DNA of 64,000 nucleotides from Penicillus capitatus (GCA_965649825.1 OZ287703.1:925722-989721); one strand, 5' to 3'; numbered from the stretch's first letter, positions 5,437 to 64,000 are shown. The notes: generated from the letters alone by a model not told the origin. Translations and numbers: made by a program.

Positions 5437-10319
<4,883 letters not shown>

Positions 10320-12270
10320 CTTGCCAATGTAACAAGAACTGCAAACGGTCGGAGCTTAAAAATGCAGTCTGATTTGACGTGTGAGCAGCGACAGCCACAG
10401 GAAAGCGCTCTACGTCAGTAACTACTAATGCACGCGTCATGCCTTGCTGCGCCGCGGAAGGATAGTAGAACCATAACACCGTTTCCTCGAACGATAAACG
10501 CAGCATCCATTTCGTACTTCATAACCTTGAGAGCGCTGCTCTGGCAGACATTGCGATAAGGGACATGTCACATTGGCTTTGGCTCATTGACAACGGAGCG
10601 CATCCACAAGCACTCGAGCAGATCGCATCGATCTCAGGATGCTTTAATGGAATCTCTTTTTGATCGACAAGTGTCTAGAAACCTTAATCTCGATAGATTC
10701 TAAAATGCGGAAGTGGCCTTACTGTTGTCTGCATTGAAACTTCGATTGTGTGGAGTGGTGTGCTCAGGAGCTTTTGTCAACCTATAAGAGACAGCAGTCA
10801 ATAACGTGCTGTTCTAAACAAAGGCAGTGGAATGCTGAAGAAGACCTCATTCGAAGTGTGCTGGGCAACTTGATCCTGGACGATCGTGTATCGTGAAATC
10901 TTCCAATCACTGGTACGTTCTGCAGTTCTCGGAAGACGGGTGCTACAGTATCTGCACAAACATACATATCCTTGGTCATCATCTAAGTCCAATCCATCGC
11001 TTGGCGACAAAGGCATCCTTCGTCTGCAGCAGAGAAAGTTGCCGTGATTGTAAGGTCAGTCGGTAGTGCTGAACACAAGAGGCGATGGACTGCACGCCCA
11101 TGAAGAGCGCATCTCAAATAGACGCGTCAGTTGACCTTAATCTGTGTTTTGGCAGATCGTGTGTGTCCATCGTTGCTGGGCATCGTGAGACGACTACCCG
11201 ATTTTCGAAAACAGATGGACTTAAAGCTAGGCCGCTTCCGTGGAAACAGTGGATAGTGACCTCCAGTATTTCACTCACGAGATCACGTCCCAGATGACCT
11301 TCAGGCGGCATATGCCGATCATTAAATGCTCATCCGTTGTTAACGTGTAGCAGACCTTCGTCAGTCATGTTTGTCAGAACCTCCCACATTCGATGTGAGC
11401 AAATTCATGTGATCCCTGATATACGACTTCAGTAAAGGCCTTAGAGACACGAAACTGCGTACAGAAGGGCGCGGACAACGGAACGCTCCATCGACAGCGT
11501 GCCGTCCGTTAAAGGACACTAGACTAGGAGAGATCAGCCTCCATGGAGAGCACAGGTGATCTCACGAGCTTCAAACGCTATCTCAGAAACTTGAAGATTG
11601 TTTCCAATCACGATCGACGGGAACGTCATATTCCGACGACCGTAATAGATTGATCACTCTCGTCCTGCGTATTGGCCCAATTAAAGTGAGACGGGAGATA
11701 ATGATGAACTGTATCGCCGCCTCACATAAGAAAAACCGTGCGTGAAGGCGACAGGTGGCAGCTGTAGTTGTCGCTGCAACTGCTGCTATATGCCAATGAC
11801 TGCTGTTGCGTTTCTGCGATGTGACGTCTCGGCGGCGCAGTCACATCTTTCTTTCCAGCCAGCGGTCTCCGCAAAACATGTCGAGAGGACGGCAATATGC
11901 AGAACCGACAGAGTCCATGACGCGACGGTTGCACCTGTCGGAAGCCACGTCTTTTCAAGTCTTGTCAAGCCTTCGGAAGGAACAGGCTGGCAGGTCAGTC
12001 GAAGTCCTAATGTCTCGCCAAAGAACGCGTCAGATACCACGCGGGCGATTATCTTAAATGGACTAACCGCTGCATGATGATCTTCACCAGCGAGGCGTCA
12101 AACAACCGCGCTCTTCATCGTCGAACGTACACCGCGTGTCGAACGTTGTCGTTCAGGGGACGGCCTCTTCCTCCTTTCGACTGTTGCACGTTTCTCTTTG
12201 TCACTCGTCTTTCCAAACGAGAATAAATCGTCAGAGCCAGAGTAGACCTCAGAGTGCTTCCTTCCAACGG

Positions 12271-13017
12271 ATGGCCGGGATGGCAACGTTGCCTTGGAAG
12301 ACGACTCTCTCTGGCATACTGCAAGACTACTCGACCCTTCTTGTGACTACCCTATGTCCTGCTCTGGCATACCGTTCTGCCTCCAAGAATCTTGAGGACT
12401 CTCCAGCTGGATGCCTCGAATCGACGGCGGGAGGATACTGTCCGTGTTATGGGTGGACTCTACGGACGCAGCTGCGAAAGAAATATAACCTGGAGGGTTC
12501 AATCTTGAAAGATATTGCGGCGCATCTCTGCTGCCACTGTGTGGCCCTTGCGAGGGTCTGGAGAGAATCCGAGATGCGGATCGAGACGCAGAACCGACCT
12601 GCGTCTCCGGCATCTCGCACGACATCGATGCAGCCGCCCGTTCAACCCATCGTCCCACCGGTGCAGCGGTTCGTTGCCCATACCAGCGGACAGGTCGGAT
12701 TTCCACCGCCTATAGGTGAGCACTTGAAGGAGAGAGAATCGACCTGCGTCCTACGCTGTTTAGGCATCCCAGTCGAGACATCATGTATCCCTAACCTTCA
12801 ACGCATCGCAGAGCCATCCACCAGATCGGTGATACCTCCAACCCTGATCATACAGCAGGCAGAGAACAGTTCGCGGATGACTGCAGACTCGCAGCCCGCG
12901 CCGTCATTTAATTCGATCTCTTTACCTGCGGCTAACCAGACAGACACTTCGGGTTCCGTGAGATTATTATCTCCGGAACGGCAGCCATTCAATACGGATC
13001 GAGATACACAAGAGTGA
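12271..13017 (+). CDS. PLAC8-family (plant cadmium resistance/CNR-like) Cys-rich protein, copy a
   Basis: LPWKTTL...LCPALAY...YCPCYGWTLRTQLRKKYNLEGSILKDIAAHLCCHCVALAR matches the PLAC8 pattern (R..LR.KY...G....D...H.CC..CAL). P/S/Q-rich tail. Exact start uncertain. Confidence 0.85.
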   Translation: MAGMATLPWKTTLSGILQDYSTLLVTTLCPALAYRSASKNLEDSPAGCLESTAGGYCPCYGWTLRTQLRKKYNLEGSILKDIAAHLCCHCVALARVWRESEMRIETQNRPASPASRTTSMQPPVQPIVPPVQRFVAHTSGQVGFPPPIGEHLKERESTCVLRCLGIPVETSCIPNLQRIAEPSTRSVIPPTLIIQQAENSSRMTADSQPAPSFNSISLPAANQTDTSGSVRLLSPERQPFNTDRDTQE

Positions 13018-21414: not shown

Positions 21415-26299
<4,885 letters not shown>

Positions 26300-27564: not shown

Positions 27565-29426
27565 TTACTCTTCGGATCTCACACATTCCTCGATGGGAGA
27601 GAGAAGCTCGGCACTCCTTTGCTGCCGTTCTCTCTCGATCATGCGTTGAAAGCGTTTCTCCGGCGGTCTCAGAATTTTGCCCAGGGAGAAATCGTTGTGT
27701 GCGATGCCCGATGCCTCCAAATCCGCAAACCGCTTCCGCACACGATTCTCGAGACTGAAGGAGAGACACGAGGGAAAGGCCACGAGCTCATCGATCTTTC
27801 GACCGAGGGTCTTTGTAAAGTAGGAGACCTTCTGCGTCAGTGTCTCCGATCGTATCGATAGCAGCCACGGAAAACGCAGCAGCAGTCGTCGGCATTCGAG
27901 AATATTCAATCTCAGCTGCGATCGGAGATGCTCCATCCGAATGCGGATTTCGGCTTCGTTGCTCGACAGCAAACGACAGCAGCCGATCAGAAGTCGTCCA
28001 GCTCCTTTGCTGTCCAATCCTGTCAGGCTTTTGAGAAACTCCACTTTCGGCCGGAGATCACGCTCGATCGATTTGTTGAGCAAAGTGGGTCGCCGTATCA
28101 GAAGGCGGAAAAAACGATCGGGGGCGATCCTTAAATCTTCCAGAAAGTAGGAACAGACAGGTCGCATCACATCTGTGCAGGAGATGTCCAGAATCGACGG
28201 CTTCTTTAACAGGAGTCGGGCGGCGTGGGCACGGGACATTCGGACATCTTCTAGACAGAAGGACAGCCATGGCTCCAGCTCATCTTCGACAGATCTGAAC
28301 CGTAGATCCACATCGCGTCGATGCAACTGCTGCAGTTCTGCCTGTTCGAATGACAACTCTGCTTTGAGAAAGGCATCGACGCCTGTGCGTCCTTGAAGCA
28401 GCGGATAGGACCGCACGTCATGCACATCTGTCGTTTTGCCTTTTGGCGTTGATGTGACGTCTGACGTTGATGTGACGACGTCAGGTGATGATGTGACTTT
28501 TGGCGGCGGAACGTCGGCTGATGGGACGTTGAGGAAGGTATTGAGTGGTGGTGTTGAATGCGGACTGCCGGGCACTCGATAGAGTTCTTCGCCGTTGGCA
28601 GCAACGACGACCGTTTCGCGCAAGGTCGTGACGATGCTGCTGATCCCTGTCTGTCCAAACTCAAGCGTCACGTCCATTTCGGTGTAATTGGATGGAGCGA
28701 TCGGTACCTACTTCCCATCACATCACACTTTTAGCAAAAGAGTGAGAGAAGAACCAACTCGCATGGAACGGTTCATGCCCTTCTCCCAAGCAAAGGACAT
28801 GCCACCCACTCCCATCCGCACACACTAACAGCCACCCCACCAGCATCACATGTCCAGCCAACAGGCATCGATCCCATACTTTGTATTCGTAGTTGCCCGG
28901 GGGTAAGCGCGTTTGCGATGTCCATAAATGACCCGGTGCCCACACACACAGCAGTCCACGTTCCTCCTTCCAGTTGCCGAGCTCAGGGCAATTGCCGCAG
29001 ACAATGACATGCTCGCCCAGTTCCACACGATAGGGAATGCAAAAACGCACGGCCACGGTACAGGCAGTTACCACCGGCTGCGACGATTCCACCACCTACG
29101 TCACACTTCTCACACTTTTTGACAAGACACGCACCGTCTCTCACATTGACAGCACCTGGAGATGGAGCCAATCGCGCCTCTTGGGGCAACGTCAGTGACA
29201 GACCGTCTACGACAGTGAAGGCGAATGGAGGGGTGGCTCGGTGCGGAGGGGCCCTACCGCCGAGTGTCCGTTCGATATCGATGAATCCGTTTCCTATGGA
29301 CGCGCTCCGTATGCGCATACGTGTGAGATGTCGTCGACGTCGTGTCCTTCTCCATTTCGCACCGTATCGCCAAGAGCAGCTACGGATCATTCTGGGCGAG
29401 AAGGCCTTCATCGATATCATCGTCAT
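27565..29426 (-). CDS. Predicted fusion: putative transit peptide + CBM20 starch-binding domain + S/T/P linker + mTERF repeats
   Basis: Exons 29145-(29318 to 29426), 28880-29095, 28759-28824 and 27565-28707, joined by phase-0 GT-AG introns of 49, 55 and 51 nt. CBM20: VRFCIPYRVELGEHVIVCGNCPELGNW...W...LPPGNYEYK...WEKGMNR. mTERF: LLIRRPTLLNKSIERDLRPKVEFL, LLLRFPWLLS, LVAFPSCLSFSLENRV. Start codon uncertain. Confidence 0.8.
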
Positions 29427-29451
29427 CGGGAAGGGCGTTGCAACCGACGAA

Positions 29452-30796
29452 ATGCGTTGCCAGATCGACGACGTCGTCATCCAGTCGCTCAAAATCGGCG
29501 CCGTCTTTCACGAACCTTTCCGCGCACATATCAACTCTCTCGACTTCCATCGCGAAGACGCCCTCCTGGTAACACCGATTCCCCGTCTCCTGAGCCACGC
29601 GATATCGACCGTCAGGTCACGGCGAGCGACGACGATTGTCTTCAGCTGTTTGACACGCACAACGCTCGGCATCTCAAATCGGTCTCCTCGCGAAAATACG
29701 GGTGTCGTTGTGTGACGTATACCCATCACCCGAACTGTGTGCTGGTGGGGTCGGCCAAAGGCAGTAACCATGCTGTGCGTTACCTGTCCCTTCATGACAA
29801 CAGGTCATTGCTCACGTCACATCATACCTGAGCCTCCCTGTCTTTTCAGATGGCTGCGGTTCTTTGATGGTCACACCGAGAGGGTCTCGGCGATTTCGAT
29901 GTCGCCCTCGAACGATAGCTTCCTCACAGCTTCCGATGATCAAACAGTGAACGCATGATGTGTGCGATCACGGTGAAGCGTAGAGTGAGATGTTAGATAC
30001 GGTTGTGGGATTTGAGGGATCCGAACTGCAGTGCCGTCTTGCACAGTCCTGGCCTGCCCTGTTGCGCCTTCGATCAGCAAGGCCTGGTTTTCGGCATCTC
30101 CTCCGGTTGTGGCGTCATCAAGCTCTTTGATATCCGTAGCTACGCTCAAGGTCCTCCATCCATCTCACACTTCTCACACATTCCTCCTGTCACATCACAG
30201 GATCGTTCGCGACCTTTGCCATCGCCCAAGAGAACTGCGCCGTCGTGCCTTTCTCCTGTCTGAAATTCAGCTACGACGGTCAGAAGCTCATCGCCGTGAA
30301 CGAAAACAACGTCTATGTGGTGGACGCTTTCGAAGGACACGTCCTGCTTAACGTCAGCACCGGTAGAAACACATCATCGCATAGGGACGATACAGATACC
30401 CACTGTCATTGTTAGAGACTCCACAAGGAGGCATCCCACTCGAGGCATCGTTCACTCCAGATGGACAGTAAGAAAGAGAGAATAGAAAAGAGATGTTTCT
30501 GTGTGGTGGTTGGTGACCAGGTACGTCATTGCCGCTTGCTACGATCGGAAGATCCGTATCTGGAATCTGGCACATGTCAGCAGTCGTCAAGATCCGTCTT
30601 CCAATGCTGCTGCTACGCCTTCGGCAGTGGTTGCCCTTGAGGGACACACAAGTGTGCCGTTTCCTACGAGCGTCCTAGCAACAAGTGTGAAATTTTTACA
30701 GGTGTACCCTCGTGTATTAAATGGGCACCATCAAAAGCTGTCATGGCTAGTGGCTGTCAGGCTCTGGCCCTGTGGATCCCCAGCTCTCCATCTTAG
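29452..30796 (+). CDS. WDR82: WD40 protein WDR82/Swd2 (COMPASS/CPF subunit)
   Basis: IDDVVIQSLKIGAVF...INSLDFHREDALLVTASDDDCLQLFD; RYLSLHDNRWLRFFDGH; VSAISMSPSNDSFLTASDD; CAFDQQGLVF; C-terminal GVPSCIKWAP...ALALWIP. Short introns. Confidence 0.9.
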
Positions 30797-31163
30797 GCAA
30801 AGGGCCGAAGAGTGACATACATCACAAGCAGAAATCTTCAAATGGTTCACAGAGGATACGGTCATCATAAAATCATGATTGTTTTTGAAATCACACTTTT
30901 CTAGCGAAACTGTTAACATGAGTGTTCTTATGATTTTATCATCAATCAATCAATCAATGAGCGAACGAACGAACGAAAGATTTGCCTATTCGCGAAGATA
31001 CAAAGCATTCCGTACAGATCACCTCTCGCGTGCGTCTAAACAATACCCTACCGCTTTGTGTAACCTTGTCCATAAAAGCTTAGTCCGTTCTGTCTCAACA
31101 AAAAATGAAAGGGGCTAGGGAGGGATTGGTTATTATGCAGGCAGGGAGGCTTGAGGGGTTATG

Positions 31164-41381: not shown

Positions 41382-42956
41382 ATGGAACGTTCATCACCAT
41401 CGCGAACGCGCGCAAAGCCGAAGGTCAAGGGCAGAAACAAGCCTCCAGACACCGCTCCGGCGGAACCACAACTTCCGCCTGACTTCCCAAAACGCCTGGC
41501 TTAGCGCGCAGCCCACGAGTCGGGCTTTCGACGGTTTGCCCGAGATAACGAAGCCTTCCTCCCGCTCCTAGACCAGGCCACGCTGAAAGCTGTCACCTCG
41601 GCAGTGCACCAGCCGGACTGGCTGATTTCGAAAGCAGAGCTGCCCTCGCTTGATAGCGAAGTGCTGCTAGGAGCTCTTCAACAGTATCTCCGCAGCTATC
41701 AAGACACTGACTCGAAGTGGGAAGCGGAACAAGACCAGACGTCAGAGGAGGATGAAGAGGACAAAATGAGTGGAATCTCGACGCACACCGCAAAGAGCCC
41801 CCAGGGCCCGACGGCCGCCCAGATGGAGGTCCCTGCCGAGCCCCAGCGCAACACGGCGGCACAGAAAGGAACCCCGTACTACTCGTTTGGCAGCTGGTTA
41901 GGAGAAATACACACAGGCATGAAACTGGCAAGGGAAGCGCTTCAAAGCCAACTACGAATGCTCAACTCCATGGCGGACGGCCTTGAACCCTCGGACGCAG
42001 ACATCAACAGCCTCACTCAGCTCGCCGCGGGAGCTCTAGGCACGATCAACGGGTTGGCAAGTGGCAGCGACCTCATGCTCGACCGCTACAAAGAATGCCG
42101 AGCCACAGCAGTCCCTCAGGCTGCCGCCGAAGCGCACCCAGAATCACACGCCGTAGGGGATCCCCCGCGCAGACGACCCCCTGCACCCCACTCTGGTAAT
42201 CTGCTCTCTTACAAGGACGCCGCCACCGCCGCTTCAACGACATCCCCAACACCCCGGATTGATGACAATCGGTCCGAGATGCTCCGCCGTCGTCGCGAAG
42301 TCTTCGGAGAGCTTAAAAAGGCCAACAGAGCAGATGAACGAGCCTTCCGGCTGCTCCAACCATCTAATCGTCTCCCGATGGCACTCGGCCTGGTAGGCAA
42401 AGCCTTCCTGGAGGGCATCAAATGGAAATCGTCAGAAGACTCCCCAATTGAAGACATCAGAAAGGATCCGCGTGGAAACTTCTACGTGCAAATCAAGCGT
42501 GCACAATTCAGACTCGTCACCAAAAGAGTTCAAGAAAACCGCAACGAAGAACAAAGCATCGATCTGCCATCTCTGGGCCCCACCCTCATTAAGGACCCCC
42601 GAAAATGTGAACGAGCCGGCTTGACACCGGCCGCCCTCACAAGAATTCACCAAGACTGGACCCTCGACCACGCCGCGGAGGAAATCTGGACATCCAACAA
42701 AGACAGATGGCAGCTAGGTCCCAACGCAACCCGCCAAGACCATATCATCCTGGAGCGTCGCCTCGCTCGCAGAGACCCGAACTCAGAAGACCCCTCGGTC
42801 CGAATCCCAAGTCAAACAATCAAGATCTGGCTCTCAAAAGAACTGGCCGCCCGGATCGAACGAGACGGTTGCGCCGTCAGATTCGACTACCAGATTCATG
42901 AGGTCCGGCGCTTCGAGGACACAACAGGTCGCCAACAGGCGACCCGCTCATTATGA
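41382..42956 (+). CDS. LINE ORF1 (gag-like, 524 codons) with one in-frame TAG at codon 41
   Basis: ATG at 41382 is in frame with the 41604 ORF; the only interruption is TAG at 41502-41504. Sequence on both sides of the TAG matches ORF1 of the left element (PDTAP; AA....FRR..R). Confidence 0.8.
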
Positions 42957-45900
42957 GCAGCACATCCTCAGCCGACACAGATCTCAGCCGTGATCACCCG
43001 CAAAGCATCCAGTCGCAGCTCCCCCCTCAATGGACTCATTGGCAGATAAATATGCATGGATCGCAACAAGCCATGGACATCCTTTCAAAGCACATCTCAG
43101 AGGAAGCAGTTGAAATAATCAGCGTCTCCGACCCAGCTTGGGTACTTCGAAGAGGTTGGGCCCCGCCGGGCTATGTCTCAATTCGTCCGCAGATTCAAGA
43201 GGAAGATGACGTTTTAGCGCTCCTCCTCATCAAGGCCAACCTGTCTTTCAAGACCCTCTTCTTGCCTGACGCCCGAGTCGCTGGTGTTGTACTTAAGTCA
43301 AACCGAAAGGACTGGTTCTTCCTTTCAGTATACATTCAACCAAACACCGGCATGGGTTTTGAAACAATTTCCACGCTGCTGCGAAACACACACAACTCGC
43401 AACAAACATGGTTCATCGCCGGAGATTTTAACTCAAGACACCCACGTTGGGGCCCGGAGGACACTCCTGAAACCAACAAGGCAGCAGGCATTCTGGATCT
43501 CTGTGATGACTTTCACCTCGCAATTCTCAACGAGTACCCCTGCCCCCCTACTTTCCGATCGCCAAACGGTCAAAGCTGGATCGATCTGACTCTCTGTTCC
43601 CAAAACTTGGCTGAATCATCGACGTGGACGGTCAGAGAAGATCTCATCTCGCTCTCGGACCATCAGATTGTGGAAACCAAGTTATGGCACTGCAGTCGTC
43701 CCCCCAAAAACGCATCCAGACAGAACTGGAGGAAGGCAGACTGGCCCGCCATCCGTAACTCCGTAAAGGAGGCGCTGGAAGGCTTCCCAGAAGCTACGCA
43801 CTGGAGGACGCTCAACTCCAGCGAGGGCTTCGATAGTCACTCGAAATTGTTCATTGAACTGATCCAGGAGGCCGCCAGACCACACGTGCCCCTCTCAGGA
43901 GCGCGAAAACCTAGGAAGCACTGGTGGAACGATGAGCTAGACCAGCTCTACAGGGTACTCAAAAGAGCCCTCCGCCGCAGAGAGAAACACAGAAGCCGTT
44001 TCGGTTGGACTCCAGACTGCCTTGAAGACGCAGTGTCCGACGCAAAAGCCCACCTCAAACATAACATTCGGAAGAACAAACGCGAAGCCTGGAGGGAATT
44101 CCTATCCAGCAACTCTGGAACCCAGTCTGACATGTGGCAAACAGTCAAGAAAATCACCCAGGCACAAAAGCGCCCAACACTGGACTTTGTGCAGAGCCAA
44201 AACGGCGAAATTCTCCATGACCCAGCAAATATCGCAGCGGCCTTGCAATCAAAGTTCTTCCCGACACCGGAAGACGTCTATCAAGACAACCCATGCACAT
44301 CAGCTACGCCCCTGCCCCGAATGCATATGGGTAATATTCCGCAGGTCTCCGAGATAGAAGCTAGGAAAGCCTTTGGCTGCGGCCGCCCCCTAGCGGCCCC
44401 TGGACCGGACGGCCTCCCCAAGGCAATCTTCCAGAGATGCATGCACAGTCTCAGTCCTCAACTCAAGGAACTCGCCTCAGCCAGCCTCCAGTTCGGCATA
44501 TGCCCCCATCACTGGAAGCTCTCTCAAGTCATAGCCCTACACAAGGGGAACAACCCAGGAAATGAGGTCGGTAAACTACGGCCCATCAGTCTCTTAAACA
44601 CGCTGGCAAAAGGCATGGAGACTCTCGTGGCTGCACGTCTGAAGTACTGGTCAGAGAAAAACATGATTCTAGACCCCTCTCAGTTCGGTTTCAGACCCGG
44701 AAAAAGCACAACAGATGCCCTGCTCACCGCTTCGGATTGGATCGCAGAACAAATGCAAAATGGTGACATTGTGTACGGTGTTGCCCTGGATCTTGTCGCG
44801 GCTTTTGACTCCATAAGCCGGGCTTATCTGGTTCAGACGCTCATACGACTAGAAGCCCCCCCGTATCTGATCCACTGGTGCAGCTCCTTTCTACAGGACC
44901 GCAAAGCAGAACTGCAGATCTCCGACTCTATCTTCACTTCGTCGACACTCGCCGGCGTCCCACAGGGATCTCCCTTGAGCCCGCTGCTATTCATCCTAGG
45001 GATCAATGCGGCCCTGCAGATCCCAAAGGACACCGGGGTGCATCTACAGGCGTATGCAGACGACATCCTCCTCCTATGCAGCGCGAACTCGGAAGAATTG
45101 GCTCGTCACAAGGCTCAGAAGACCTTGGACCTACTGGTGGAATGGAGCCGCAAAGCTGGAATGCAGTTCTCAGAAAAGAAATGCCTGGCAATAAGATTCC
45201 AAGCAAAGGTCAGACGAGCAGAGATGCTCCCGTTGTATCTGGGTTCGGCCAAGCTTAGAGCAGTCAAAAGCTGCAGATACTTAGGGATGATCCTGGATGA
45301 AAGACTCACTTGGAAACCGCACCTGCAATTTGCCCAACAGCGCGCCCGGGAACGTCTGGCAATCATCAGAAGGTTCTCAGCCAAGACCTGGGGCTTCTCA
45401 CCGGAAGCCATGTGGCAACTCACAACCAAGGCCCTGGAACCTGCACTGTACTACGGGGCGGAAGCTCTAAGCCGCATACAAAACTCCCCCCAACATCTGT
45501 CAATCCTCAACCGAGTCGTTCGCCAAGCTGGCCTCCTGATCTCGGGCTGCCTGAGAACGACCTCCTACGAAGCAGTGTTCGCCCTGGCTGGCCTCCTCCC
45601 GGCGCAAATGGAAATCAGACGCAGAATTCTCTACTGGCACCTCAAAAAGGACAGAGGGAAAATACCCCCGTTGGTCTCCGAACTGCACTCAGACAACCGC
45701 AAAGATCCTGGCCCACTCCGCCGCAGACTGACTGCCAGACAATGGCACCGGAACCTCGCAATCAAAGAGCAGCTGGAACTTCCACCGATGAAGCTGTGCA
45801 GTTTTTCCCCAGAGCTGGCGGGCTTCCTGGAAGCAAATGTAGATGAAGATCATCGTCCAGAATGGATACTTGCAGTGGCAGAGGCAGATCTGAACCTCAC

Positions 45901-46753
45901 AGACGGTACAAAAACGGCCATTGTCTGGCAGCTTACAGGGAGGCAGAAGATCGCAGGGAGAGGGGTTTTGGTTGCGCCACATCAATCAATAAAGGCGGAG
46001 GTGTTGGCAAGCATCCGAGAAGGTCTATACTCCCTAAGTGATCTCCTTCATGAAGCAAGCGGCTCACAGTCCCTCGGTATCATCGCACGGAGAAGCATAT
46101 ATCAACAAGAGCTTACATCTTCGTTCAACGTATGTAAGGACATGCACCTTATCCAACAGTGGTGGATCAAATGGACAATGGCTGGAAACCAAGTGAAATG
46201 GTTCACACAAAGCTGGTCCCCAGGACGAAGCCCTTACCAAGCAGCTAAACTCTCAGCAGAACACATTCTGATGCAAGCACGAAGGCTACCCCCTTCAGCG
46301 AAATACACAGCTCTCGGCTGGTGCAAAAGACACATCAGCTTCACCCTAAACAACTGGACACGAGAACAACTGGACAATGCTGATAAGGGAAGAGCAATCC
46401 TCGACCTAAACCCGCCGATGGGGAAAGGACATTTCCCCACAAGGAAACTCCAACGCACCGACGCCTCACGGGTCAATCAATTCCTGGCAAACCATTTCCC
46501 GTCCAAGGCATATCTCAGCCGCTTTCACTGTACAGAAGACGTGGAGACGTGCGTATGTGGTCAAGAAGTAGAAGATAGAGATCACCTGCTTTACTCCTGC
46601 CCCCGCTTTCACCGACGAAGGATGATTTACGGACAGGAATCTCAGGCTGAAGCGGATCAATCACACCCCCTTTGGAATGCCCCCCACGCTCTGGCGGCTT
46701 TCCTAGAAGAAATCGCTCAGGATTGGCAGCAGCAAGGAAGGACATGGCACTGA
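42953..46753 (+). CDS. LINE ORF2: APE endonuclease + reverse transcriptase + degenerate RNase H-like region + C-terminal CCHC
   Basis: APE: QINMHGS, GDFNSRH, SWIDLT, SDH. RT: PGPDG, LRPISLL, QFGFRPG, DLVAAFDS, GVPQGSPLSPLLF, YADD, YLG. Terminal CVCGQEVEDRDHLLYSC. Open for 1266 aa. Confidence 0.97.
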   Translation: MSSTSSADTDLSRDHPQSIQSQLPPQWTHWQINMHGSQQAMDILSKHISEEAVEIISVSDPAWVLRRGWAPPGYVSIRPQIQEEDDVLALLLIKANLSFKTLFLPDARVAGVVLKSNRKDWFFLSVYIQPNTGMGFETISTLLRNTHNSQQTWFIAGDFNSRHPRWGPEDTPETNKAAGILDLCDDFHLAILNEYPCPPTFRSPNGQSWIDLTLCSQNLAESSTWTVREDLISLSDHQIVETKLWHCSRPPKNASRQNWRKADWPAIRNSVKEALEGFPEATHWRTLNSSEGFDSHSKLFIELIQEAARPHVPLSGARKPRKHWWNDELDQLYRVLKRALRRREKHRSRFGWTPDCLEDAVSDAKAHLKHNIRKNKREAWREFLSSNSGTQSDMWQTVKKITQAQKRPTLDFVQSQNGEILHDPANIAAALQSKFFPTPEDVYQDNPCTSATPLPRMHMGNIPQVSEIEARKAFGCGRPLAAPGPDGLPKAIFQRCMHSLSPQLKELASASLQFGICPHHWKLSQVIALHKGNNPGNEVGKLRPISLLNTLAKGMETLVAARLKYWSEKNMILDPSQFGFRPGKSTTDALLTASDWIAEQMQNGDIVYGVALDLVAAFDSISRAYLVQTLIRLEAPPYLIHWCSSFLQDRKAELQISDSIFTSSTLAGVPQGSPLSPLLFILGINAALQIPKDTGVHLQAYADDILLLCSANSEELARHKAQKTLDLLVEWSRKAGMQFSEKKCLAIRFQAKVRRAEMLPLYLGSAKLRAVKSCRYLGMILDERLTWKPHLQFAQQRARERLAIIRRFSAKTWGFSPEAMWQLTTKALEPALYYGAEALSRIQNSPQHLSILNRVVRQAGLLISGCLRTTSYEAVFALAGLLPAQMEIRRRILYWHLKKDRGKIPPLVSELHSDNRKDPGPLRRRLTARQWHRNLAIKEQLELPPMKLCSFSPELAGFLEANVDEDHRPEWILAVAEADLNLTDGTKTAIVWQLTGRQKIAGRGVLVAPHQSIKAEVLASIREGLYSLSDLLHEASGSQSLGIIARRSIYQQELTSSFNVCKDMHLIQQWWIKWTMAGNQVKWFTQSWSPGRSPYQAAKLSAEHILMQARRLPPSAKYTALGWCKRHISFTLNNWTREQLDNADKGRAILDLNPPMGKGHFPTRKLQRTDASRVNQFLANHFPSKAYLSRFHCTEDVETCVCGQEVEDRDHLLYSCPRFHRRRMIYGQESQAEADQSHPLWNAPHALAAFLEEIAQDWQQQGRTWH

Positions 46754-60081: not shown

Positions 60082-64000
<3,919 letters not shown>

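Follow-up and report, generated by a model that had tools for sequence, protein, structure and literature searches.

Does the reverse strand of this locus encode a starch-binding CBM20 protein and an mTERF protein side by side, or a single protein that carries both domains? The locus lies in a 64,000-nucleotide (nt) stretch of Penicillus capitatus DNA (GCA_965649825.1, OZ287703.1:925722-989721), which we call the window. The list of open reading frames (ORFs) for the window gives a CBM20 ORF at 28718-29095 and a separate 370-amino-acid (aa) mTERF ORF at 27565-28677 (-). A first-pass annotation had pointed to these same two ORFs and proposed that splicing joins them. Our analysis supports one nuclear gene of five exons at 29426-27565 (-), which fuses CBM20 to mTERF in a 551-aa product. 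We assign this gene model a probability of about 0.95.

The joining had been attributed to three phase-0 GT-AG introns of 49, 55 and 51 nt, and we recovered them at exactly the proposed positions, as introns 2, 3 and 4 of our model (Table 1). Removing them yields one open reading frame. By contrast, reading through intron 3 shifts the frame and loses the W..NR motif of CBM20. Their lengths are indeed normal for the window, as had been claimed: introns of approximately 45-55 nt are the usual size, and the neighbouring WD40 gene shows similar gaps between its tblastn matches. Intron 1 was missing from the earlier model. It lies in frame within the window sequence and, because this 51-nt interval keeps the frame, it is invisible from the window alone. 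The first-pass annotation was therefore right that CBM20 and mTERF are joined in one spliced protein, in which Pfam recognises both domains, and wrong in treating the first exon as uninterrupted. Since intron 1 is removed, the product has 551 aa and not 568.

A related locus provides a comparative test of splicing. The metagenome contig L001 (661 kb, ENA ERZ26696514) carries a gene whose DNA is 91% identical to that of the window gene. Introns 1-4 of L001 measure 56, 48, 58 and 50 nt, compared with 51, 49, 55 and 51 nt in the window. Because introns 2-4 of L001 shift the frame if they are read through, the frame in that contig is held only by splicing. Similarly, the L001 frame switches between ...ERALG and DGLSLTLPQ..., and removing the 56-nt GT-AG interval found there mends it. 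As this switch falls within the stretch equivalent to the first exon of the earlier model, that exon cannot be single. The five-exon model gives complete proteins in both cases, of 551 aa in the window and 542 aa in L001.

The pattern of divergence between the two genes follows the same boundaries. All indels in exons are multiples of three, whereas the differences in intron length are not, save for intron 3 (+3). Identity ranges from 78% to 88% in introns and from 89% to 97% in exons. This distribution of indels between exons and introns is far beyond chance. The orthologue of intron 3 in L001 (5797-5854) begins with GC, representing either a GC-AG intron or a displaced donor; it is the most diverged of the four and has three extra nucleotides. 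At the 5' end of the gene, the start ATG is kept in L001. In L003, a 31-kb Logan contig (SRR33785046), in-frame stops lie just upstream of the equivalent Met of the Arg-rich N-terminus, which supports the assigned start codon. The exon 1 motif NGFIDIERTLG is kept both in L003 and in P0003, a more distant family member.

P0003 is encoded on L002, a 1.8-kb JGI contig (3300008031), as a single uninterrupted ORF that lacks all four intron intervals. At the site of intron 1, for example, L002 and P0003 read IERALENGMSVNLPK, whereas in the window the intron separates IERTLG from DGLSLTLPQ. The L002 ORF was already annotated with both CBM_20 and mTERF, and its 5' end is open. One point tells against relying on this contig: it carries no poly(A) tail, so that its origin from a transcript is likely but unproven. 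Two further genomic relatives retain some of the introns. In L003, introns occur at both window positions, between YEYK and CV (intron 3) and between NRxxR and VP (intron 4). L004 (ERR4592244) has an intron between YEYK and CV only, so that one exon holds the C-terminal end of CBM20 as well as mTERF. The intron 3 position is thus shared with L001 (58 nt, GC-AG), L003 and L004 (50 nt).

Intron 4, at the junction of the two original ORFs, decides whether the locus could instead hold two genes. Under that alternative, a small CBM20 protein would end within a retained 28708-28758 (...LLLKV followed by a stop), an mTERF protein would start from the ATG at 28677, and the introns would be coincidental. 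Both ORFs do stand alone, an ATG exists at 28677, and prokaryote-style gene callers divide the gene in every metagenomic relative. However, the Met at 28677 sits within the final CBM20 beta-strand (MDVTLEFGQ), the match to the CBM_20 hidden Markov model (HMM) crosses the junction, and the coding sequence flanking the junction is highly conserved on both sides. Moreover, retention of this intron, the outcome that the first-pass annotation had named as fatal to the fusion, is contradicted by the relatives. The intron is out of frame in L001 (50 nt) and absent from L004, L002 and the gene models P0006 and P0270, where the frame is continuous. We consider two genes very improbable and reject them for practical purposes, given that the relatives (L001-L004, P0006 and P0270) either read continuously or need splicing.

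Table 1. Coordinates of the CBM20-mTERF gene, its parts and its divergent neighbour, counted from the first letter of the window.
Feature	Coordinates	Strand	Length (nt)	Description
Exon 1	29258..29426	-	169	ATG at 29426-29424; Arg-rich presequence (aa 1-45) and motif NGFIDIERTLG
Intron 1	29207..29257	-	51	Phase 1; GTAGGG...CGTAG; newly recognised through comparison with L001 and L002
Exon 2	29145..29206	-	62	Segment before CBM20, DGLSLTLPQEARLAPSPGAVN; 97% identity to L001; alignable to P0003
Intron 2	29096..29144	-	49	Phase 0; GTGAGA..GTAG
Exon 3	28880..29095	-	216	N-terminal two-thirds of CBM20; equivalents of W543, W563 and K578
Intron 3	28825..28879	-	55	Phase 0; GTATGG..TTAG; falls between YEYK and CV
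Exon 4	28759..28824	-	66	CVRMGVGGMSFAWEKGMNRSMR; CBM20 site-1 equivalents of W590, E591, N595 and R596
Intron 4	28708..28758	-	51	Phase 0; GTTGGT..GTAG; directly before the final CBM20 strand
Exon 5	27565..28707	-	1143	Includes the stop TAA at 27567-27565; final CBM20 strand, beta-hairpin motif RETVV..G.ELYRV, linker and mTERF
Exon 5, CBM20 strand	to ~28663	-		
Exon 5, linker	~28662-28390	-		
Exon 5, mTERF	~28389-27592	-		aa 278-543
Spacer	29427..29451	.	25	Between the start codons of the head-to-head CBM20-mTERF and SWD2/WDR82-like genes
SWD2/WDR82-like WD40 gene	~29452-30800	+		Divergent neighbour; ATG at 29452; first intron 47 nt

What kind of protein results from this splicing? Searching the spliced product against Pfam, a check of the kind suggested in the first-pass annotation (InterPro), placed both families above their cut-offs. 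CBM_20 (PF00686) was matched with an E-value of 2.9e-14 and 53.1 bits (cut-off 23.3) over profile positions 1-91 of 97, and mTERF (PF02536) with an E-value of 7.8e-26 and 91.2 bits (cut-off 23.1) over positions 76-314 of 314. Because exons 3, 4 and 5 all contribute to the CBM_20 match, the domain is complete only when spliced. The HMMER alignment to the starch-binding domain (SBD) of Aspergillus niger glucoamylase (1AC0) likewise spans these exons, and the PDB sequence matches comprise glucoamylase and cyclodextrin-glycosyltransferase (CGTase) SBDs. Exon 4 does supply the motif missing from the CBM20 ORF, as had been proposed, since its W..NR corresponds to W590 and N595.

The CBM20 domain occupies approximately aa 90-186, which AlphaFold2 models as a beta-sandwich of seven or eight strands between aa 91 and 185. 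In Foldseek comparisons it superposes on STBD1 (8x8k, TMt 0.81), the beta-amylase SBD (0.78) and the glucoamylase SBD (1kul, 0.75), and also on the CBM20 of GPCPD1. We aligned eight family members with the A. niger domain, whose binding-site residues have assigned roles (PMC9069913); W543 and W590 correspond to W119 and W161 in the 551-aa product. The equivalents of the site-1 residues W543, K578 and W590 are invariant in all eight, as are those of W563, E591, N595 and R596. Between the window and L001, the ratio of nonsynonymous to synonymous substitution rates (dN/dS) in CBM20 is 0.12, indicating purifying selection.

The mTERF solenoid is predicted with 22 AlphaFold2 helices between aa 281 and 539, at a predicted local distance difference test (pLDDT) score above 90. 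Foldseek matches it with a probability of 1.0, the TMt being 0.68 for MTERF3 (3m66), 0.59-0.62 for MTERF4 and 0.47-0.58 for MTERF1 with DNA; the MTERF4 matches include mitoribosome assembly intermediates and NSUN4 complexes. The domain is basic, with an isoelectric point (pI) of 9.4, and its dN/dS of 0.07 again indicates purifying selection. Between the two domains, approximately aa 187-277 form a Ser/Thr/Pro-rich linker that varies in length among relatives and is predicted to be disordered (pLDDT <50). Its dN/dS of 0.76, against 0.12 and 0.07 for the flanking domains, shows that the linker is free to vary while both domains are maintained. Directly after CBM20, a motif that reads RETVV(M/V)..(N/T)G(D/E)ELFRV (aa 198-217, ~28629-28570) is conserved in all relatives about as well as the domains. 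AlphaFold2 draws it as a low-confidence beta-hairpin, and it matches no Pfam family. This hairpin may either extend the CBM20 sandwich in a manner specific to the family or serve as an interaction site.

At the N-terminus, residues 1-45 contain 12 Arg and 6 Ser, with no Asp or Glu, for a net charge of +14, which bears out the earlier description of an R/S-rich N-terminus. Arg-rich N-termini are also found in L003, in P0270 and at the open 5' end of L002. Judging by this composition, an organellar-type presequence is plausible.

To what extent is this architecture shared? A word-indexed protein search returned one brown-algal mTERF and P0001, a 362-aa mTERF ORF with 87% identity that is located on L001, where a CBM_20 ORF lies immediately upstream of it. 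The distant family emerged when 1.84 billion cluster representatives were searched exhaustively with HMMER. P0003 (485 aa, 46% identity, E-value 1e-121) aligned in one piece over query positions 45-542. P0006 (444 aa, 31% identity) is the Caulerpa lentillifera gene model g7510.t1 and carries both domains, as does P0270, a 517-aa EukProt model (g3265.t1) recovered by a profile search. The relatives that the first-pass annotation had suggested seeking thus exist, and the architecture is not unique to the window. P0004, P0005 and P0019 are ORF fragments that comprise the mTERF part only. In L003 and L004, the mTERF ORF is preceded by CBM20 exons according to tblastn, and a RabGAP-TBC gene is found upstream in both L003 and L001. 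The N-terminal exons of P0270 are nearly identical to those of the gene on L004.

Caulerpa has at least two paralogues with neighbouring gene numbers, P0006 (g7510.t1) and P0019 (g7519.t1), which may reflect a local duplication. The model of g7519 is annotated without the CBM20 part and begins exactly at the last CBM20 strand; it is probably truncated.

Overall, both domains are under purifying selection, and members with as little as 31% identity retain the fusion. Among the best 150 representatives, the two domains occur together only in family members, and from these best 150 matches the architecture appears to be confined to a green-algal lineage allied to Bryopsidales, with the proviso that it would go unseen wherever a gene model had been split. 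Scanning JGI metagenome contigs for the family pattern gave 401 pattern matches, none of which was a relative by tblastn.

What might such a protein do? We tentatively favour, at even odds or slightly less, a plastid factor that binds nucleic acids and is anchored to starch or sequestered on it. The presequence would direct import into the plastid, and CBM20 site 1 would dock the protein at the surface of the starch granule, as for SAGA1 and SAGA2 of Chlamydomonas. The flexible linker would then let the basic mTERF domain bind plastid DNA or structured RNA, such as ribosomal RNA or a transcript 3' end, beside the granule. Starch would thereby govern where this plastid gene-expression factor resides and, through that, how available it is. 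Either the nucleoid or RNA would be held at the starch, or the factor would be titrated off its target when starch surface is plentiful. In green algae the plastid is the one compartment that makes starch. Starch anchoring would be compatible with the intact site 1, the basic mTERF solenoid and the green-algal host. Precedents support this logic: CBM20 is the module that localises SAGA1 and SAGA2 to pyrenoid starch (PMC6744930, PMC13167743), plant mTERFs act in termination, splicing and ribosome assembly at chloroplast nucleoids (PMC7909791), and PTST2-MFP1 joins a starch-binding scaffold to a nucleoid-associated DNA-binding protein (PMC10801857).

Several observations weigh against starch anchoring. 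The AlphaFold2 model of CBM20 has only moderate confidence (pLDDT about 70-79). Site 2 of the domain is degenerate: the Y527 position is occupied by L, V, G or S in every member, and six of the eight have W at the Y556 position, the remainder showing R or a gap. Since site 2 is not universal among CBM20s, this degeneracy does not exclude membership of that family. Arg-rich presequences of green algae do not tell plastid from mitochondrion, and MTERF4, which is among the closest solved structures, works partly via protein partners. The next-best matches, through whose names the mTERF subfamily was sought, were hypothetical proteins of Tetraselmis, brown algae and land plants, and such names are too uninformative to assign a subfamily or, with it, the likely nucleic-acid target.

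The intact site 1 and the long flexible linker would serve a starch-status switch as well as a tether. In such a switch, granule binding would sequester the mTERF domain, and plastid transcription or ribosome biogenesis would fall as starch accumulates and rise as it is depleted, whether over the day-night cycle or with the change from chloroplast to amyloplast. The high dN/dS of the linker suggests that neither its precise length nor its geometry is critical, and the CBM48 of AMPK beta, with glycogen, shows in principle that a CBM can sense a glucan. However, the sequence holds nothing that separates a switch from a static tether, and we regard the switch as doubtful.

The NSUN4 complexes among the top Foldseek matches would also fit a role in which the mTERF solenoid is a protein-protein scaffold in the style of MTERF4-NSUN4. 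It would recruit a partner, either an enzyme or a structural protein, to granules and so act in starch initiation, morphology or turnover. Non-enzymatic CBM scaffolds are known to organise starch, as in PTST2 with MFP1 (PMC10801857) and in SAGA1 and SAGA2. Yet the mTERF domain is strongly basic, and the characterised plant and algal mTERFs all act on organellar DNA or RNA (PMC7909791). A scaffold of this type is distinctly unlikely.

Finally, the protein could be mitochondrial or dual-targeted, its CBM20 then being either vestigial or a binder of some soluble or non-starch alpha-glucan. Proteins imported into mitochondria typically have Arg-rich amphipathic presequences, and many mTERFs are mitochondrial, for example MOC1 of Chlamydomonas. 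The restriction of green-algal starch to the plastid argues against this location. Furthermore, the CBM20 is not vestigial, given its low dN/dS and a site-1 triad that is invariant among members only 31-46% identical. We therefore hold a mitochondrial role to be more improbable still than the scaffold, and retain starch anchoring in the plastid as the preferred, tentative reading.

How does the protein compare with known systems? It resembles the plant and algal mTERFs (Arabidopsis mTERF4/BSM, mTERF5, mTERF6, mTERF8/pTAC15 and mTERF9, and Chlamydomonas MOC1) and human MTERF1, MTERF3 and MTERF4 in its mTERF repeats, predicted solenoid fold and basic charge, and putatively in an N-terminal organellar-type presequence. 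It differs from them in adding an N-terminal CBM20 and a linker of approximately 90 residues. A text search of a plant mTERF review found no mention of starch or of an added domain (PMC7909791).

With SAGA1 and SAGA2 (PMC6744930, PMC13167743), the protein shares the design of a non-enzymatic green-algal plastid protein, its own plastid location being inferred, in which a CBM20 starch address is combined with a second module for another plastid structure. In those proteins the second module consists of Rubisco-binding motifs and coiled coils, whereas here it is an mTERF solenoid, and the sequences are unrelated beyond CBM20. The window protein is thus analogous to SAGA1 and SAGA2 in logic and is not a member of their group. 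A SAGA-like Rubisco-binding reading was considered separately and rejected: the protein contains just one W[RK]xx[LIVA]-like string, WRYGA, at aa 19-23 of the presequence, and P0270 does not preserve it.

In the PTST2-MFP1 system of Arabidopsis, a starch-binding module is likewise paired with a protein first described as DNA-binding and nucleoid-associated. MFP1 is a thylakoid- and nucleoid-associated coiled coil, and the pair sets the site of granule initiation (PMC10801857). That system comprises two proteins, with a CBM48 and no mTERF, whereas the window gene encodes one covalent polypeptide. In laforin (CBM20 with a phosphatase), STBD1 (CBM20 with a membrane anchor and an Atg8-interacting motif), GPCPD1 and plant GWD3/PWD, CBM20 likewise brings an unrelated activity to an alpha-glucan particle, but none of the partners binds nucleic acid or is an organellar gene-expression factor.

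The first-pass annotation had named no characterised protein with this architecture, and the literature that we searched agrees. A full-text search for CBM20 together with mTERF found no paper, and among the titles and abstracts returned for "starch binding domain" with mTERF, no such protein appears. By the sequence comparisons above, the architecture is real, conserved and uncharacterised. The fusion is undescribed rather than undiscovered, as it is present in the unnamed public gene models g7510.t1 and g3265.t1. The locus also holds a lesson for annotation, since prokaryote-style calls split the gene and its in-frame intron 1 becomes visible only by comparison with a relative.

Upstream of the gene, an SWD2/WDR82-like WD40 gene is arranged head to head with it (Table 1). 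With the ATGs only 25 nt apart, each gene must have its promoter and 5' untranslated region overlapping the coding region of its partner. L001 is highly identical across the spacer and the SWD2 stretch, where the sole indel, of 1 nt, falls inside the spacer. The best named matches of the SWD2/WDR82-like protein are from Bryopsis sp. KO-2023 (50% identity) and Ostreobium quekettii (48%, a lower bound because our model of this gene is crude), with other green algae and land plants ranking next. Together with the Caulerpa family members, these matches indicate that the host of the gene is a green alga close to Bryopsidales, the siphonous green algae. O. quekettii itself, whose G+C content is 52.4% against 50.6% in the window, was weighed as the source and rejected because its SWD2 orthologue is only 48% identical.

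The window has a G+C content of 50.6%, and Rfam and transfer RNA scans of its 64 kb gave no matches. Several other elements were observed. A non-long-terminal-repeat retrotransposon resembling a long interspersed nuclear element (LINE) spans 41604-46753 (+). Its 1266-aa ORF (42953-46753, +) combines an apurinic/apyrimidinic (AP) endonuclease (Exo_endo_phos_2) with a reverse transcriptase (RVT_1), and is preceded by a 450-aa ORF (41604-42956, +) that has no Pfam matches and is possibly ORF1. ABC-transporter exon fragments (ABC_membrane, ABC_tran) occur at 6560-7498 (-), 25021-26061 (+) and 60583-61461 (+); L001 (8570-12282) has an equivalent, in a matching position, of the fragment immediately downstream of the mTERF gene. 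A PLAC8-family ORF is found at 12136-13017 (+).

What, then, would this gene mean for the algae that carry it? mTERFs are major and poorly understood regulators of organellar gene expression, and CBM20 is a proven starch address in green algae. A conserved fusion of the two, maintained by selection, predicts a nucleic-acid-binding plastid factor that lives on starch granules. It would offer a handle on the spatial organisation of plastid gene expression and on whether that expression senses stored carbon. At its furthest, a granule-resident mTERF might physically tie stored carbon to the plastid expression machinery, be it the nucleoid, transcripts or intermediates of ribosome assembly, with the amount of starch surface setting the capacity for transcription or translation; as a full account this seems unlikely. 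If true, it would be a direct link from a polysaccharide to gene expression inside an organelle, and it might bear on the differentiation of chloroplasts and amyloplasts in Bryopsidales and on the unusual autonomy of their plastids.

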